Of a stretch of DNA of 64,000 bases, positions 113 to 11,103 are shown in pieces (position 1 is the first letter of the stretch; every line of letters begins with the position of its first letter). This stretch comes from Perkinsus chesapeaki ATCC PRA-425 (lineage: Eukaryota > Protista > Perkinsozoa). A model generated the notes under the pieces. The model made no database searches. It saw only the letters and a list, made by a program, of their open reading frames with translations, and was not told the DNA's origin. The translations under genes were made by a program, and so were the position numbers. The stretch is from NCBI GenBank assembly GCA_013115145.1, contig JAAPAO010000002.1, positions 186,001 to 250,000 of the forward strand, read 5' to 3'.

Positions 113-601
113 GGGGTTAATGATATGATTGTTGGTTATTTTCACTGCGGAAGTGTTTCGAATATGCAATCAACTTGTGTTTTGTAGTGGGGTCCCATGG
201 TGTCCTCGGTCGCAAACTGCTTCGGCATCGTTTGACAAAATAGTCGCAGCCAACGGTGGTTTTGTGATTACGCCATTGGCACTGATTATAGCTAAAAATG
301 TTTGCCGAGCTTTGCAAGTAATCAGCGTCGTTGATATCATTCCCGAATGCAACGAATTTCGCTCACACATTCAAAGCCTTCAGACGCAAGTACGTAAAAG
401 GTCTGCCAAGTATGATGAAGGACAATGGTTTAATTGGACCAATTCACTGCAAATGCGTCTGACATGTCATTGCCAATACCAACTGCATTCAATGTAACTC
501 AAGTAAAGCTTTCAGCTTGAATTGAAACACAGTGCACTTAACGAGTATAACAAGAGAACAGTGGTATTTCCTGTTTCGCAGTTCGCAGTGCGCGACAAAC
601 T

Positions 602-2905
602 CTACTCGGTAACAACGATCGCTTCAGCTTCGAAAGCCTGCGCTTTTCCTCTTCTGCGGATCTCATCGGCCTCGGCTTGACATTTAGCGTAGCGTCTCTT
701 CAAAGCCTTGAACTGCTTCTTTGAAGCAGCGAAATCACCATAGCCGGCGAGCTCGAGCCAGTCTGGAGACGGGCCGTAACCAACCTACCAGGCAAGACAG
801 TACAGATCTAAACGTACCAATCCTCCTCCCATACCTTGGTGTAGCCCCAATCAGTATAGCCATTCTGGTACTTTCCGAGCAGGGTAAACGTGAGATCAAA
901 CCAACGATTGGTGAGATCCTCGCAGAAAGCGGGCATTGCGGCCTCGAGCTCTGATAGACAAACCTCCTGTTTAGAACTCATGAGCTAGCCGAAGATGATA
1001 CCTTCGTCAGACTTCTCTAATACCATCATATCAAGCTCGCTCTCTACAGCCACTTGAGCTTTTCGAACATCTTCAATCATGTAGCGGTACTTCAAGTCCA
1101 TCACGTTCGAAACCGACAATACGGCCCACCACAAGGAACTGCGGTTGAACTCACCCTGCCATGCGTACTCCAGAGCCGGTATTGAAGTCTGATAAAGAGG
1201 CAACGATAAAATGCATACCCATATCAAAAGACCAATGAATTACCACAGCTTGCTGGGGTTTCACAACAATGGGGACATAAACGCTGGCATGAGGAGTACC
1301 TAAGAGAGATACTCCCGTAACACAGTGGGGTTTGCCGGACCATACCAGGAGCAAAGTAAATAACATTGGACTTGTTCTGGTAGGATACTGCAAAGTAGGA
1401 ATACTGTGTGCGATACAGTGAAATAGCACGCTCCCAGCCGCCGTACTTGAAGGAACTCTCAGCATCAGCACCATCGTACCTACAGCGCACGTTCCTCAGC
1501 ACAGAGAGCGGTGTAACTTACTACCTGTTGGGGGTGTTGAAAGCACCGCCGGCGATAGAGTTTTTGGTGAGATCATAAGGGGTCCCTTCGTAATGGTCCC
1601 GATAGAGACGCTTGAGGAAGTCTATGGTAACAGGCTCATCAGGCTCCACAGAGAAGGGATAGGTAGCTCTGTCCCATTCAACACCAAGCTCGGGATCTAG
1701 TTCGAGCGAAGGAGCGAACAGGGAAAGGCCTCTCCAGAGACGACGACCGGCATAGTACGGATGATCATACCTGCCGCAAGAATTCCTTCCACTCATCTAC
1801 AGTCGGCACTTACTCGCTCACGCTATAGACCCTGACGAAGTCTAGTTTGCCAGTTCCATCCCACCAGCCAAGTCTGAGAACACGCAATCTTTTTAAGAAC
1901 CGAACAAGCTTTTAATGTCTCCCCTATTACCTCTTCGCCACGTCGAAAATATTCTTAGAGAACATGAAGTTTTCAGAGTCATCGGCATCGATCTCGCGGA
2001 TTACGAAGACATTAGGTACCATCGTAGCGTGGCCCTTGGGAACCTTCTGGGCAGCCCACACCGCTCCCTTGCCAGTATCATCAGCCAGTATATGGAAGAC
2101 CCAGGCCTCGGTCTTGTCGGCAATGGTCAAAGCCTCTCCGGCTTCATTAATAGTGGTGGTGCCGTAGAAACCGTACTCCTCGGCAAGACCACCCATTGTC
2201 TCGATGGCACACCTAGCGGTAGCGCAGCGCTCCATAGCAATATCGGTGAGCTCGCCAACCCAGAGGAGTGCGCCATCAGTGTCCGATGTATCCTCTGAAG
2301 AAACAAAATTTTGGAGTCCCAAATAATCGTCCCTCGCTACTTCGGGGCTCAGCAGCCAAGCGGCCACTACAGCTGCTCTCTCCCATTGATAAACCAGCTT
2401 CATTCATAACACCATAAGCTGCATCCCAATAACCATAAGTGGTACCCTCAGGCATATCAATATATCCAATGGGTACACTAGGCTGTTGATCAGGAGATGC
2501 TGGAGCATAACTTGGTGCTCTGGAAGCATCCACAATCCTGGGGTAGTCGTCAGTCTGTTTGTAGACTGCTCTCTTCTCGCCCGCGGCGAACGTCTTGGGA
2601 GGTACATACCTGAGATTCCTGAGATCCTCCAGAAGAATCAAATCATCATAGCTTACACCATCCTAAAGTCAATCGGGCTGCCGTCCGCGCTGGTGCCGGA
2701 GATGCAACCTCCATCAATAGTAGCTGCACAATCAACAGCCATAGCAGTGCAGTGATCATGATCTTGGCGCACACGCTCTCTAGGAACCTGAAGGATACGT
2801 TGTGTGTATGGACTGGATATCGGTGGGCGCTTACGCTACCTCTAGGGTGGATCCTAAGGCCAACCCGAGTCCACTCAGAATAAGTGAAGAAATTCTGCGC
2901 ATCAT
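602..2905 (-). CDS. Peptidase family C69 (dipeptidase/secernin-like Ntn hydrolase), copy 1, signal peptide, about 9 introns
   Basis: Spliced reading MMRRISSLILSGLGLALGSTLE|VPRERVRQDHDHCTAMAVDC...GESSCSGRL...EAGEALTIAD...AVWAAQKVPKGH...WERAISLYRT...LLGKYQNGY...VVTE*. Collinear with the intronless copy at 9343-11103. Confidence 0.88.
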
Positions 2906-3324: not shown

Positions 3325-5445
3325 TTATTCGTCTCTATGACGGATGGCATCGGCCACTCCCTGAGCCTTAACATAGCGCTCCCTTAGGCCGTCGAACTGT
3401 TGCTTAGTAGCGTCAAACTTGTCGAAGCAGGCTGCCTTCAACCAGCCAGTTCCGGGGCCGTAGCCGGCCTGAGAATGAACATCACTGGATTCCGAAACAA
3501 GAACACTAATCTACTTTAGCATAGCCCCAGTCGGTGTATCCATTCTGATATTTGCCTAAGAGCGTATAGTGAAGCTTGAACCAGCGGCGGGTGAGGTCGT
3601 CGCATATCGCGGGGGTTTCCTTTTCGACCTCTGAGAACAGCCGAGATGACGACCGATTACTGAAATAACAGCAATAACCTTCAGGCGATTTTGTCTTCAT
3701 CATCTTGTCGAGTTCGTCTTCAGCTTCCTTCTGAGCTTTCTGAACATCCTTCACCATGTAGCACCATTTCAAGTCCATGGTATTGGACACGCTCAGAACT
3801 GCCCACCATAAGGACTTTTCGTTGAACTCACCCTGCCAGGTATTCTCTAGTGCTGGAATAGAAGTCTAAAAATGGTATGAGGAATCGATGAGGATTAGCA
3901 TGAAACTTACCACAGTTGGATTGGGCATTACAACAATAGGGACGAAGACGCTTGCGTGAGGGGCACCTGACCGTTGCGCTGATACGAATGGAAGAGTTTA
4001 CGCCTACCAATGGCGAAATGAAGGACGCCGGGCTTTCCCTTGTATGCAACAGCGATGTAGGCATACTGCGTCCGGAATAGAGATATCGCTCTCTCCCAGG
4101 CACCGTACTTCACGGAGTTTTCAGCCTCAGATTCAGCGTATCTAGTAGAGGTTAAAGATGCAAATGAAGCAATAGTCCGGCATACCTGTTGGGAGTTCTG
4201 AACGGGCCACCAGAAGTCACGTGGTTGGTAAGGTCATATTTGGTACCCTCCATATGATCACGGTACAGATGCCTCATCTGGTCCAAGGTGATCGGCTTAT
4301 CGGGCTTCACAGAGAAGGGATAGGTCGGACAATCGACTTCAACGCCAAGCTTAGGATCGAAGTTTTGTGAAGGTGCCCATAGGGAGAAGGCCCTCCACAA
4401 ACGACGTCCTGCGTAGTAAGGATGGTTGTACCTACCAGGAAGCTTGGGTGGATGGGACTGGAGCAAGACCGCGTACTCGCCAACGCTGAATGTCCTGGTA
4501 AAGTCCAGTAGACCGATACCATCCCACCAGCCCAATCTGAAAGGAGGTCAGTCCTTGTGTATCGAAAGAGCATCCGAGCCCACCTGTTAGCAACATCGTA
4601 CATGTTCTTTGAGAATATAAAATTCTCGCTATCCTTGGGGTCGATACCACGAATAACGAAAACGTTAGGCACAATAGTGGCGTGACCCTTCGGAACCTTC
4701 TCGGCAGCCCAGACAGCCCCCTTTCCGGTATCGTCAGCAAGCACATGGAAGACCCATGCCTCGTCGCCGTCAGCGACGGTCAACGCTTCACCAGCTTCCT
4801 CAACTTCAGTGGTGCCATAGAAGCCATGTTCTTCGGCTAAGCGGCCCATGGTCTCGATGGCCCCACGGGCAGTACTGCATAGCTCTAGTGCAACACTGGC
4901 GAGTTCTCCGATCCAGAAGAGCGCACCATTGGCGTCTTCATCTGAACGAAGTAGACATGTCAGAGCCAACGTTTCGGCTTCTGGTATACTTACCCACAGG
5001 AAGGGAAGTCAAGCGACCACTGCAGCTGCTTTCACCCATACACACGCCTGCTTCGTTCATCAGGCCATATGCGGCTTCCCAGTAACCATAGGTCTTCCCC
5101 TCAGGCATGTCGATATACCCTATGGGCTTGCTGAGCTCCTGCTTCGGGTTGGCAGGGGCATAACTAGGGGCCCTCTCAGGATCGACGATCCGAGGGTACG
5201 ACTGGAACTGCTTGTAGATCGCTCTTCTCCCGTTAGGGCCATAAGTCTTAGGAGGTATATACCTGGCAAAGGGAACTCACAGCACTCCTCTACATGATTG
5301 ATGCCATAACATACACTAAGCGAAAATCCATGGGAGTGCCATCGGCACTAGTAGCCGCGATGCAGCCCCCGTCTGCAGTGGCCGATCCATCTACAGCTGT
5401 AGCGGTACAGTGGCCTCTTTGTAAAAAGTCACCAGAAACACTCAT
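3325..5445 (-). CDS. Peptidase family C69, copy 2, no signal peptide, about 8 introns
   Basis: Exon 1 MSVSGDFLQRGHCTATAVDGSATADGGCIAATSADGTPMDFRL (5315-5445), then YIPPKTYG...GESSCSGRL...WERAISLFRT...LLGKYQNGY...IRHRDE*. An in-frame TGA lies just upstream of the ATG. Confidence 0.88.
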
Positions 5446-5592
5446 TTTTCAAGATTACAGGAACTAGATAGAACTGAGCGAGAATTCCCTCTGGTACTGC
5501 GCAAGGACTTCGGCGAATTCGACGGAGGTGTAGAATGCTGGGGCGATACACTTGTTACTTATATTGATGTAACACATGCCCCAAAAGCCTAC

Positions 5593-5723
5593 ACCAAACG
5601 ATTATCCAAGGGACTGCCATCAGCGCTAGTGGCAGCTATGCAGCCACCATCGGCGGTCGCCGCACAGTCGACAGCGACTGCTGTGCAATTGCCGCTTTGC
5701 AAAAAATTTGAGGACTTTGCCAT
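5593..5723 (-). other. Duplicated/alternative first exon (1a) of C69 copy 2, or an orphan exon
   Basis: MAKSSNFLQSGNCTAVAVDCAATADGGCIAATSADGSPLDNRL+GT|gtaggc. It is 131 nt, the same length and phase as exon 5315-5445. Confidence 0.8.
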
Positions 5724-6003
5724 TCCGAAAGAGCGAAGATAACTTCTGAAGAAATGACAGTAGGATGTCGCGGACTAATTCCCATTAGGATTAGCGGTGC
5801 TCGCGAAGCAGGGGACAGCCGACACAAAGAGTGACTAATTTGTTTTAATGTCGCACAACCATTGGACTTGTCGATAATATCACGTTTTGTATGTTTTGGC
5901 CATTCATAAAGACGATGGGGATAGTGCGTTGCCCAGTGAACACAAAAGTCTGTTACAATATGTACAAGAAAGCGTGAAATAAAGATATGCATGAGTAGCA
6001 AAA

Positions 6004-9342: not shown

Positions 9343-11103
9343 TTACGCGCCAATAGCGGCGACACGAATTTCATCGGCTTCCTTCTGAGTCTCCGTGTAA
9401 CGATGCCTGAGTTCAGCAAACTGCTCAGGGGTAGCGTTGAAGTCTTGGAATCCGGCAGCACGTAGCCACTCAGATGAAGGGCCATAGCCGACCTGCGTGT
9501 AGCCCCAGTCAGAGTAGCCATTCTGGTACTTGCCGAGCAGAGTGTAGTGCAGATTTAGCCACTTCTCAGTAACGTAGTCTCCGAACTCGGCCGTTTGGGC
9601 CTCGACTTCATCAGGGGTTTGAGTAGCCATCATCACATCGACTTGGTGTTCGATCTCGTACTGGGCCTTCCTGACATCGTTAATCATATACATGTACTTG
9701 AGATCCATAACATTAGAGACGGTCTCACTCGCCCACCAGAGAGACTTACTGCTGAACTCTCCTTGCCAAGCATTTTCGAGCGCAGGGATCGACTGCACCG
9801 TCGGATTATGCTTGACGATAATAGGGATGTAGACGCTAGCATGGGGAGTCATGGGAGCAAAGTAGATAACATTGTAGTCTTTGTACGTAACAGCAATGTA
9901 AGAATACATAGTACGATAGAGAGAAATTGCTCGTTCCCAAGCACCGTGTTGGAAAGTAGCTTCAGCTCGACCGCCGGCATACCTATTAGGGGTCTTGAAC
10001 GGACCACCAGCAACGACATGACGGGTAAGGTCGTAGTCAGTGCCTTCCATGTGATCTCTATAGAGACGCTTCATGAAGTCGATGGTTACGGGCTCATCGG
10101 GCTGCACTGAGAACGGATAAGTAGGATGGTCCCACTCAACACCTAAGGTAGGGTCGAGATTGAGAGAAGGGGCAAATAGTGAGAGGCCTCTCCACACACG
10201 ACGACCAGAGTAGTAGGGGTTGTTGTACTCGCTGACACTGTACGTGGCTGCGAAGTCGAGAAGACCTTCACCATTCCACCAGCCAAGTCTCAAAGCAATA
10301 TCGAAGATGTTGTCGGAGAACATGAAGTTGTCGCCATCTGTAGGATCGATTTCCCGGATAACGAAGACGTTCGGGACGATAGTGGCATGGCCCTTAGGGA
10401 CTCGCTCAGCAGCCCAAACGGCTCCTTCAGCGGTATCATCTCCCAAAATATGGAACACCCAGACTTCGGTGCCATCGGCAATAGTGAGAGCTTCGCCGGC
10501 TTCCTTCACGCCAACAGAGCCATAGAAACCGTGCTCCTCAGCAAGCTTGCCCATAGTCTGGATAGCACATCTAGCGGTGGAACATACTTCAAGAGCAATA
10601 TCTGATAACTCGCCGACCCAGAACAATGCACCGCTGCCGTTGGGGCCATCTCCTTTAGGAACGGAGCTCAAGCGGCCACTACAGCTGCTCTCTCCCATTG
10701 ATAAGCCAGCTTCATTCATAACACCATAAGCTGCATCCCAATAACCATAAGTGGTACCCTCAGGCATATCAATATATCCAATAGGTACACTAGGCTGTTG
10801 ATCAGGGGATGCTGGAGCATAACTTGGTGCTCTGGAAGCATCCACAATCCTCGGGTAGTCCTGGTTCTGCTTGTAGACAGCTCTCTTCTCGCCAGGACCA
10901 TAAGTCTTGGGAGGAACATACACCATCCGGAAATCCAAGGGGCTTCCATCAGCACTAGTTGCTGCTATGCAACCACCATCAGCAGTAGCAGCACAGTCGA
11001 CGGCAGTAGCCGTACAGTGGTCATGATCTAAACGGTCACGAGGGGGTTCTATGGCGGCACTGAGACCTGCCGACGCCAAAAGAGCTAGTGTGAATGGGAG
11101 CAT
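9343..11103 (-). CDS. Peptidase family C69, copy 3, intronless, signal peptide, 586 aa
   Basis: Single ORF. The likely start is MLPFTLALLASAGLSAAIEPPRDRLDHDHCTATAVDC, directly after the pyrimidine tract/AG cttctttttattttccacag. Confidence 0.92.
   Translation of the reverse strand: MLPFTLALLASAGLSAAIEPPRDRLDHDHCTATAVDCAATADGGCIAATSADGSPLDFRMVYVPPKTYGPGEKRAVYKQNQDYPRIVDASRAPSYAPASPDQQPSVPIGYIDMPEGTTYGYWDAAYGVMNEAGLSMGESSCSGRLSSVPKGDGPNGSGALFWVGELSDIALEVCSTARCAIQTMGKLAEEHGFYGSVGVKEAGEALTIADGTEVWVFHILGDDTAEGAVWAAERVPKGHATIVPNVFVIREIDPTDGDNFMFSDNIFDIALRLGWWNGEGLLDFAATYSVSEYNNPYYSGRRVWRGLSLFAPSLNLDPTLGVEWDHPTYPFSVQPDEPVTIDFMKRLYRDHMEGTDYDLTRHVVAGGPFKTPNRYAGGRAEATFQHGAWERAISLYRTMYSYIAVTYKDYNVIYFAPMTPHASVYIPIIVKHNPTVQSIPALENAWQGEFSSKSLWWASETVSNVMDLKYMYMINDVRKAQYEIEHQVDVMMATQTPDEVEAQTAEFGDYVTEKWLNLHYTLLGKYQNGYSDWGYTQVGYGPSSEWLRAAGFQDFNATPEQFAELRHRYTETQKEADEIRVAAIGA

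Follow-up and report, generated by a model that had tools for sequence, protein, structure and literature searches.

The analysed window comprises 64,000 nucleotides of Perkinsus chesapeaki ATCC PRA-425 (assembly GCA_013115145.1, contig JAAPAO010000002.1, positions 186,001 to 250,000 of the forward strand), and the present text deals with one of its genes, here named gene B, a member of the C69 peptidase family whose 5' part holds two homologous coding exons in tandem, 1a and 1b, each with a catalytic cysteine and each able to be joined in frame to the same downstream enzyme body. All positions are those of the window, unless another locus is named. The features of gene B are the following.

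3325-5723, minus strand: gene B, C69 family, ten exons per form, no signal peptide
5746-5757, minus strand: pyrimidine tract with AG (5747-5746), which precedes the 1a ATG by 22 nt; candidate acceptor, read from the letters alone, for the spliced leader (SL) or for a 5' untranslated region (UTR) of the 1a form
5593-5723, minus strand: exon 1a, candidate alternative first coding exon, 131 nt, ATG, 12-residue propeptide, Cys13, end in phase 2
5587-5592, minus strand: donor GTAGGC of exon 1a; the unspliced frame reads GTG TAG here, giving a 44-codon open reading frame (ORF)
5446-5592, minus strand: spacer between 1a and 1b, with AGs at 5475-5474 and 5465-5464 as candidate SL acceptors for 1b
5315-5445, minus strand: exon 1b, candidate alternative first coding exon, 131 nt, ATG, 12-residue propeptide, Cys13, end in phase 2
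5263-5314, minus strand: intron 1 (52 nt, GTATGT...CCAG) of the 1b form, with the shared acceptor at its end
4994-5262, minus strand: exon 2, the first shared exon, whose first base (5262) completes the Val codon begun by 1a or 1b
3325-4941, minus strand: shared C69 body, exons 3-10, with introns of 41-48 nt, delimited by PF03577 matches, alignment to paralog A and a GT-AG check
4584-4941, 4477-4536, 4186-4431 and 4008-4141, minus strand: exons 3 to 6
3911-3966, 3679-3865, 3515-3630 and 3325-3468 (stop included), minus strand: exons 7 to 10

With either 1a or 1b in front of the shared exons, a frame of 1701 nt (566 residues) in ten exons is obtained, every border of which is GT-AG. These frames were checked exon by exon, the exons not being joined, and the intronless neighbour paralog A was used as proxy for the tests of family and fold. 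Exons 1a and 1b each encode the nucleophile Cys13, the first two beta strands of the core sheet and the invariant Asp35, and exon 1b has in-frame stops immediately upstream of its ATG and GTATGT as donor. An earlier note on this DNA had described both exons with these coordinates, a common length of 131 nt, Cys at residue 13, equal phase, a GT donor and a pyrimidine/AG site upstream of each, and had held that either joins exon 2 in frame. The sequence confirms all of this, with the precision that position 5263, named there as the acceptor, is the last base of the intron (acceptor AG 5264-5263) and that the exon begins at 5262. At the DNA level 1a and 1b are 67% identical, and 30 of their 43 residues are the same; a search of the P. 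chesapeaki genome with the 1a peptide recovered 1b at E=1.6e-14 and, therefore, their resemblance is due to homology and not to chance.

Conservation of both first exons in Perkinsus marinus

Two further loci were compared with gene B, namely L012, the retained P. marinus ortholog in the reference genome of ATCC 50983, and L011, a Logan genomic contig 95% identical to it. Exon 1a has intact orthologs at L012:7257-7387 and L011:5105-5235 and exon 1b at L012:7568-7698 and L011:5422-5552. In P. chesapeaki and at both of these loci each exon is 131 nt long and has its own ATG, Cys13 and a phase-2 GT donor, so that homology, tandem arrangement, equal length, equal phase and separate starts, as expected of tandem-duplicated first exons, were found in all three. 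Neither start loss nor frameshift, stop or neutral substitution pattern was seen in 1a of any of them, and exon 2 is 81-82% identical in amino acids with L012 and L011. As synonymous sites are saturated in almost every comparison, ratios of non-synonymous to synonymous substitution rates (dN/dS) were not used, and the synonymous (pS) and non-synonymous (pN) differences and the codon-position counts between P. chesapeaki and P. marinus are given below.

Exon 1a: 71% identity, 0 gaps; differences at codon positions 1/2/3 of 5/4/29 (38 differences, chi-square p=1.4e-7); pS 0.83, pN 0.13
Exon 1b: 73% identity, 0 gaps; differences at codon positions 1/2/3 of 5/5/25; pS 0.77, pN 0.11
Upstream flank: 36% identity
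Spacer between 1a and 1b: 33% identity over aligned columns; near the shuffle mean by global alignment
Intron 1: 43% identity

Since the flank, the spacer and intron 1 are only 33-43% identical, with the spacer at shuffle level, neutral DNA has been randomised between the two species. Judged by their substitution patterns, exons 1a and 1b are equally constrained coding islands under purifying selection. The residues C13, T14, A22, G26, D35, D40 and R42, present in both exons of P. chesapeaki and retained in 1a, show no or almost no variation among 36 distant members of the family, and 1a has changed between the species only at sites that are less conserved in the family (mean conservation 0.42 vs 0.60, one-sided p=0.03). 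When the DNA of 1a was compared with the 41.7-Mb genome, its sole match was itself, the nearest paralog being 76% identical with saturated synonymous sites. Recent gene conversion was considered as the cause of the good state of 1a and was ruled out, no donor being present in the genome. Because of the codon-position bias, the randomised surroundings, the family residues kept and the lack of a genomic match, 1a is best seen as a coding exon that was selected through the whole divergence of P. chesapeaki and P. marinus, and not as a relic.

Both exons also lack a signal peptide, and their propeptides share a pattern in which Met is followed in turn by Phe-Leu-Gln, a single residue, Gly and, preceding the Cys, Asn or His; consequently, they are duplicates of each other within the B lineage. 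On this comparative evidence, the tandem exon duplication is older than the split of P. chesapeaki and P. marinus. The proposal of the earlier note that 1a and 1b are swappable first exons on one enzyme body thus finds strong comparative support in two intact exons under equal purifying selection amid randomised surroundings.

Predicted splicing of exon 1a to the shared body

Of the AGs downstream of 1a, that of exon 2 alone leads to a full-length frame in P. chesapeaki and P. marinus alike, and the strongest pyrimidine tract lies there. The donor hexamer of 1a (GTAGGC) is used again at the intron 6 donor of gene B (4002-4007), and P. chesapeaki, L012 and L011 have all kept its context, GTAGG followed by one variable base, A or T, and TTGGG. 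Two mRNA forms are predicted because only the exon 2 acceptor offers a full frame in both species and because the donor is both reused and conserved. Moreover, as the nucleophile and the fold-invariant residues of 1a are selected and the sole body available is that of gene B, 1a must end up in a peptidase fold. The 1b form would start at 1b and have the 52-nt intron 1 removed, whereas in the 1a form the donor (5593|5592) would be joined to the exon 2 acceptor with removal of a 330-nt intron containing 1b. The spacer at 5446-5592 would accordingly be the 5' part of this long intron in the 1a form, and outron or 5' UTR in the 1b form, and the outcome would be two enzymes of 566 residues with one shared body. 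Gene B, as read from its sequence, probably has two alternative first coding exons that yield two enzyme forms, the splice of 1a, its translation and the choice of exon being the predicted steps.

Several observations weigh against two enzyme forms. The intron between 1a and exon 2 (330 nt, and 364 nt in P. marinus) has roughly seven times the length of the nine other introns of the gene (41-52 nt), the 1a donor could be captured by AGs that lie closer to it, with a truncated frame as the result, and the unspliced 1a frame ends at the TAG inside the donor in all three genomes, the 44-codon ORF being conserved as well. Protein word searches with paralog A, exon 2 and the public P. marinus model P0006 returned genome-derived models and one genomic Logan contig, and neither a transcript product of gene B nor a P. 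olseni ortholog. The comparison spans two species lineages only, P. chesapeaki and P. marinus. Finally, the public P. marinus models of gene B (P0006, at L010:10001-11692 in a second copy of the region described below, and a model at L012:7732-9711) use neither 1a nor 1b, yet they are uninformative on this point, the exon with the catalytic Cys being absent from both: P0006 begins at an internal Met of exon 2 and the L012 model at an ATG inside intron 1. Both models need correcting.

The earlier note had further stated that joining 1a to the acceptors in front of 1b gives an immediate stop, which would make the two exons mutually exclusive. This is true of P. chesapeaki, where the 1a frame continued past the AGs at 5475-5474 and 5465-5464 stops after 2 and 6 codons respectively, and where every AG of the spacer leads it to a stop before the 1b ATG. 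It does not extend to P. marinus, where the frame stays open through 1b if the 1a donor is joined to the AG that precedes the 1b ATG by 31 nt (L012, 7388-7568). Therefore, the immediate stop is not the conserved basis of exclusivity.

Some of these points would suit a different role of 1a, as a conserved upstream open reading frame (uORF) or micropeptide, which would yield a 44-residue peptide when the RNA is left unspliced or a slightly longer one after a short splice, and which would never be joined to exon 2; its product would regulate translation of the main ORF from 1b or act on the enzyme. The TAG that closes the unspliced frame in P. chesapeaki, L012 and L011, the stops to which the nearer AGs lead shortly before the 1b ATG in P. 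chesapeaki and the unusual length of the productive 1a intron for this gene are all consistent with such a role. However, conservation of the TAG cannot count as separate evidence, because this triplet overlaps the donor consensus, and the phase-2 end, the exact 131 nt and the donor context are conserved. In addition, the constraint on 1a mirrors the profile of the enzyme family, which fits a core strand of an N-terminal nucleophile (Ntn) hydrolase and not a regulatory peptide. A uORF is consequently an unlikely explanation of 1a, although it is the one that survives best beside the two alternative first exons.

Decay of a second P. marinus copy

In P. marinus the region exists in two copies that have diverged, each of which has lost genes that the other keeps. 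At L012 (7250-8030 region) gene B is followed by gene C and then by a proteasome gene, as in P. chesapeaki, and the adaptin-like and RabGAP neighbours are missing; at the second locus, L010, these two neighbours are retained and gene C is gone. In L010 (9460-10120 region) a homolog of 1b was found at 9689-9819, the 1a homolog lacks an ATG, is shortened by a 43-nt deletion and contains a stop, and exon 2 carries a frameshifting deletion of 19 nt. From these lesions, L010 is a case of neutral decay and indicates that unselected copies do break on the time scale that separates P. chesapeaki from P. marinus. Its use as proof that 1a is dispensable was rejected, as this copy is a decaying duplicate with exon 2 frameshifted too and the retained ortholog is L012.

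The broken 1a homolog of L010 could also be taken to mean that 1a is a non-functional relic, still open by chance, left either by a partial duplication at the 5' end or by a fourth paralog now truncated, and the stretch after 1a looked at first like intron 1 followed by a decayed exon 2. But a decaying duplicate with a frameshift in exon 2 says nothing specific about 1a, and the supposed exon 2 remnant is not conserved, lies at shuffle level and is not found by tblastn. Nor do the 5/4/29 distribution of differences, the pN of 0.13, the absence of indels and the ATG and donor kept in three genomes fit a relic where neutral DNA has been randomised and where the genome offers no possible recent conversion donor, and the 29% DNA divergence of L012 and L011 from P. 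chesapeaki excludes contamination or recent introgression. The earlier note had proposed decay of 1a in relatives as the sign of a relic; in the retained ortholog L012 the exon is intact, and decay was met only in L010 together with the broken exon 2. A relic is thus very improbable. The last alternative, that both exons stand in one mRNA with 1a joined to the AG some 31 nt ahead of the 1b start and with 1a plus linker as a long propeptide self-cleaved at the 1b Cys, can be given hardly any credence, since this join, although in frame and open through 1b at L012 and with the same acceptor sequence aligned at L011, stops after 2 codons in P. chesapeaki, where all other spacer AGs also stop before 1b, and therefore cannot explain selection on 1a in both species; besides, neither the nucleophile nor the fold-invariant residues would be required in a propeptide.

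Family membership and fold

The PF03577 profile scored 50.6 bits on exon 3 of gene B and 24.0 bits on the exon 4/5 stretch (cut-off 23), and a Pfam scan of the 43-residue first exons alone gave no match, these being too short to score. Paralog A matched the profile with 117.5 bits over profile positions 2-400, and gene B is 72-75% identical to it exon by exon. Profile position 2 aligns with Cys30 of paralog A, and residue 13 of 1a and of 1b aligns at the same place. Cys-Thr opens the domain, and the nucleophile Cys, the Thr and the invariant Gly and Asp by which C69 members are recognised are all present. The AlphaFold model of paralog A (pLDDT 88, pTM 0.86) has a disordered propeptide, after which the Cys opens a strand at 31-35, and a second strand at 45-52 ends at the invariant Asp. 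When this model was compared with the PDB, the best matches were 5IMG and 5IAU (C69 dipeptidase; E about 1e-23, with 2e-23 for 5IAU), followed by bile-salt hydrolases and penicillin V acylases. The predicted structure of paralog A thus displays the alpha-beta-beta-alpha fold of Ntn hydrolases. By its profile matches, its catalytic residues and the modelled fold of its paralog, gene B is a C69 Ntn hydrolase, putatively of the dipeptidase type.

Like other members of the C69 family (the 5IAU dipeptidase, secernins), Perkinsus gene B combines a PF03577 match with a domain that starts in Cys-Thr. In Perkinsus the invariant Asp stands 22 residues after the Cys, which is the spacing of C9 and D31 in the Lactobacillus farciminis C69 dipeptidase (5IAU, 5IMG, 5IMH), and C9 and D31 are the residues mutated in PDB entries 5IMG and 5IMH. 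To our knowledge, no C69 gene is known with two alternative first exons that bear the nucleophile. Expressed sequence tags of P. marinus trophozoites include C69 transcripts (PMC2868825).

Gene B is the middle member of a tandem trio of C69 genes, A, B and C, all on the minus strand within 11 kb and very different in structure. Within Perkinsus C69 the B type has no signal peptide, in contrast with its neighbours:

9346-11103, minus strand: paralog A, C69 (PF03577), intronless, signal peptide
about 593-2905, minus strand: paralog C, C69, about ten tiny introns, signal peptide on a separate exon at 2840-2905

Two cysteines retained by the secreted paralogs A, C and L004 (the last an ORF in another part of the genome, whose product is identical to the P. 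chesapeaki protein NCBI FOL47_004592) have been lost from gene B. The first stood seven residues after the nucleophile and is gone in 1b (codon 20, about 5386-5388) and still present in 1a, and the second closed a motif of exon 3 (around 4860) in which two Cys are separated by four residues. These losses may reflect disulfides dropped after a move to the cytosol.

Differences between the two predicted forms and possible choice of the first exon

Several positions are fixed within each exon type and differ between the two. These are the residue directly before the Cys (Asn in 1a, His in 1b), the third residue after it (Val in 1a, Thr in 1b), position 20 (Cys in 1a, Gly in 1b) and positions 21 and 39; at position 41, which adjoins the conserved Arg, 1a has Asn or Ile and 1b Phe. 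The two enzymes would also differ in their propeptides. From these residues alone, it is plausible that self-activation differs between the forms, depending on whether Asn or His precedes the scissile bond, or that their substrate pockets differ through position +3 and position 41.

As to how one exon would be taken and the other left, P. chesapeaki, L012 and L011 all have an AG about 17-22 nt upstream of the 1a start, and both species have another some 31 nt upstream of the 1b start, these sites being matches to the consensus only. SL trans-splicing is established in the genus Perkinsus, as are frequent introns with sizes of 39-1622 bp (PMC3101222, PMC2868825, PMC9399869). In the genome, the 21-nt Perkinsus SL exon gave 30 matches (16 exact and 14 with one mismatch), compared with 0 for the reversed control. 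SL trans-splicing at the acceptor before 1b would compete with cis-splicing from 1a; two transcription starts would serve as well. Selection of the first exon by the site of SL addition, as the earlier note had proposed, is plausible on the arrangement of these acceptors. The fuller scenario, in which a contest of trans- and cis-splicing chooses the module and the resulting forms differ in self-activation or in the substrate pocket, with perhaps a use in different life stages, is put forward only tentatively and is itself rather doubtful.

The SL copies are carried by contigs C8, C135, C411, C1631 and others, several of them paired about 6 kb apart on one contig, which suggests repeated units of the SL RNA gene.

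Comparison with known systems

The vertebrate UGT1A and clustered protocadherin genes have arrays of variable first exons, which are spliced to constant exons that all of them share. Gene B resembles them in its tandem homologous first coding exons with their own starts, in the shared downstream exons, in the functional N-terminal module that each first exon encodes and, as far as the predicted splicing goes, in the removal of the downstream alternative as intron. It differs in having only two such exons, of 131 nt each, that encode a catalytic nucleophile and propeptide instead of a substrate- or ligand-binding domain, and in belonging to an organism that trans-splices a leader, so that the choice may fall at RNA processing instead of at separate promoters.

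A second class is that of mutually exclusive exons derived from tandem exon duplication, as in Dscam, ion-channel genes and the exon pair of pyruvate kinase M. Equal length and phase, homology, purifying selection on both exons and the breaking of the frame upon double inclusion in P. chesapeaki liken gene B to this class. Those exons, however, are internal and are chosen by splice-site competition, steric hindrance or RNA pairing, whereas 1a and 1b both stand first and each supplies an ATG, which would make a special exclusion mechanism unnecessary, and the breaking of the frame is not conserved in P. marinus.

Alternative SL trans-splicing that alters the N-terminus is reported for trypanosomatid aminoacyl-tRNA synthetases (PMC8319005) and for sma-9 of C. 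elegans (PMC2904332), and a further source argues that it is not widespread in trypanosomes (PMC6821157). With these cases gene B would have in common one gene with two SL acceptor positions (at gene B, candidates) and two N-termini, and Perkinsus possesses the SL system. The known cases expose a longer or shorter N-terminus, usually a targeting signal, whereas gene B would exchange a homologous catalytic module and would also need a cis-splice across the other exon.

Within the limits of a comparison of genomic sequences, gene B is a probable case of tandem-duplicated alternative first exons, a known class in an unusual setting, the nucleophile module of an Ntn hydrolase in an alveolate with leader trans-splicing. 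Should both forms be expressed, they would represent a clean and evolutionarily old isoform diversity in perkinsids, where alternative splicing is barely charted, and the part exchanged would be the nucleophile-plus-propeptide segment of a presumably self-activating Ntn hydrolase and not a targeting signal. The gene is also a simple natural test of the competition of trans- and cis-splicing on one pre-mRNA, in which the counting of junctions is made easy by two exons, one shared acceptor and tiny constitutive introns.

Other observations at the locus

An adaptin-like gene sits between paralog A and gene B. Within the shared body, intron 4 of gene B (4432-4476, minus strand) is 45 nt long, in frame and free of stops, so that its retention would add 15 residues and leave the protein otherwise intact; the equivalent intron of L011 and L012 holds a stop.

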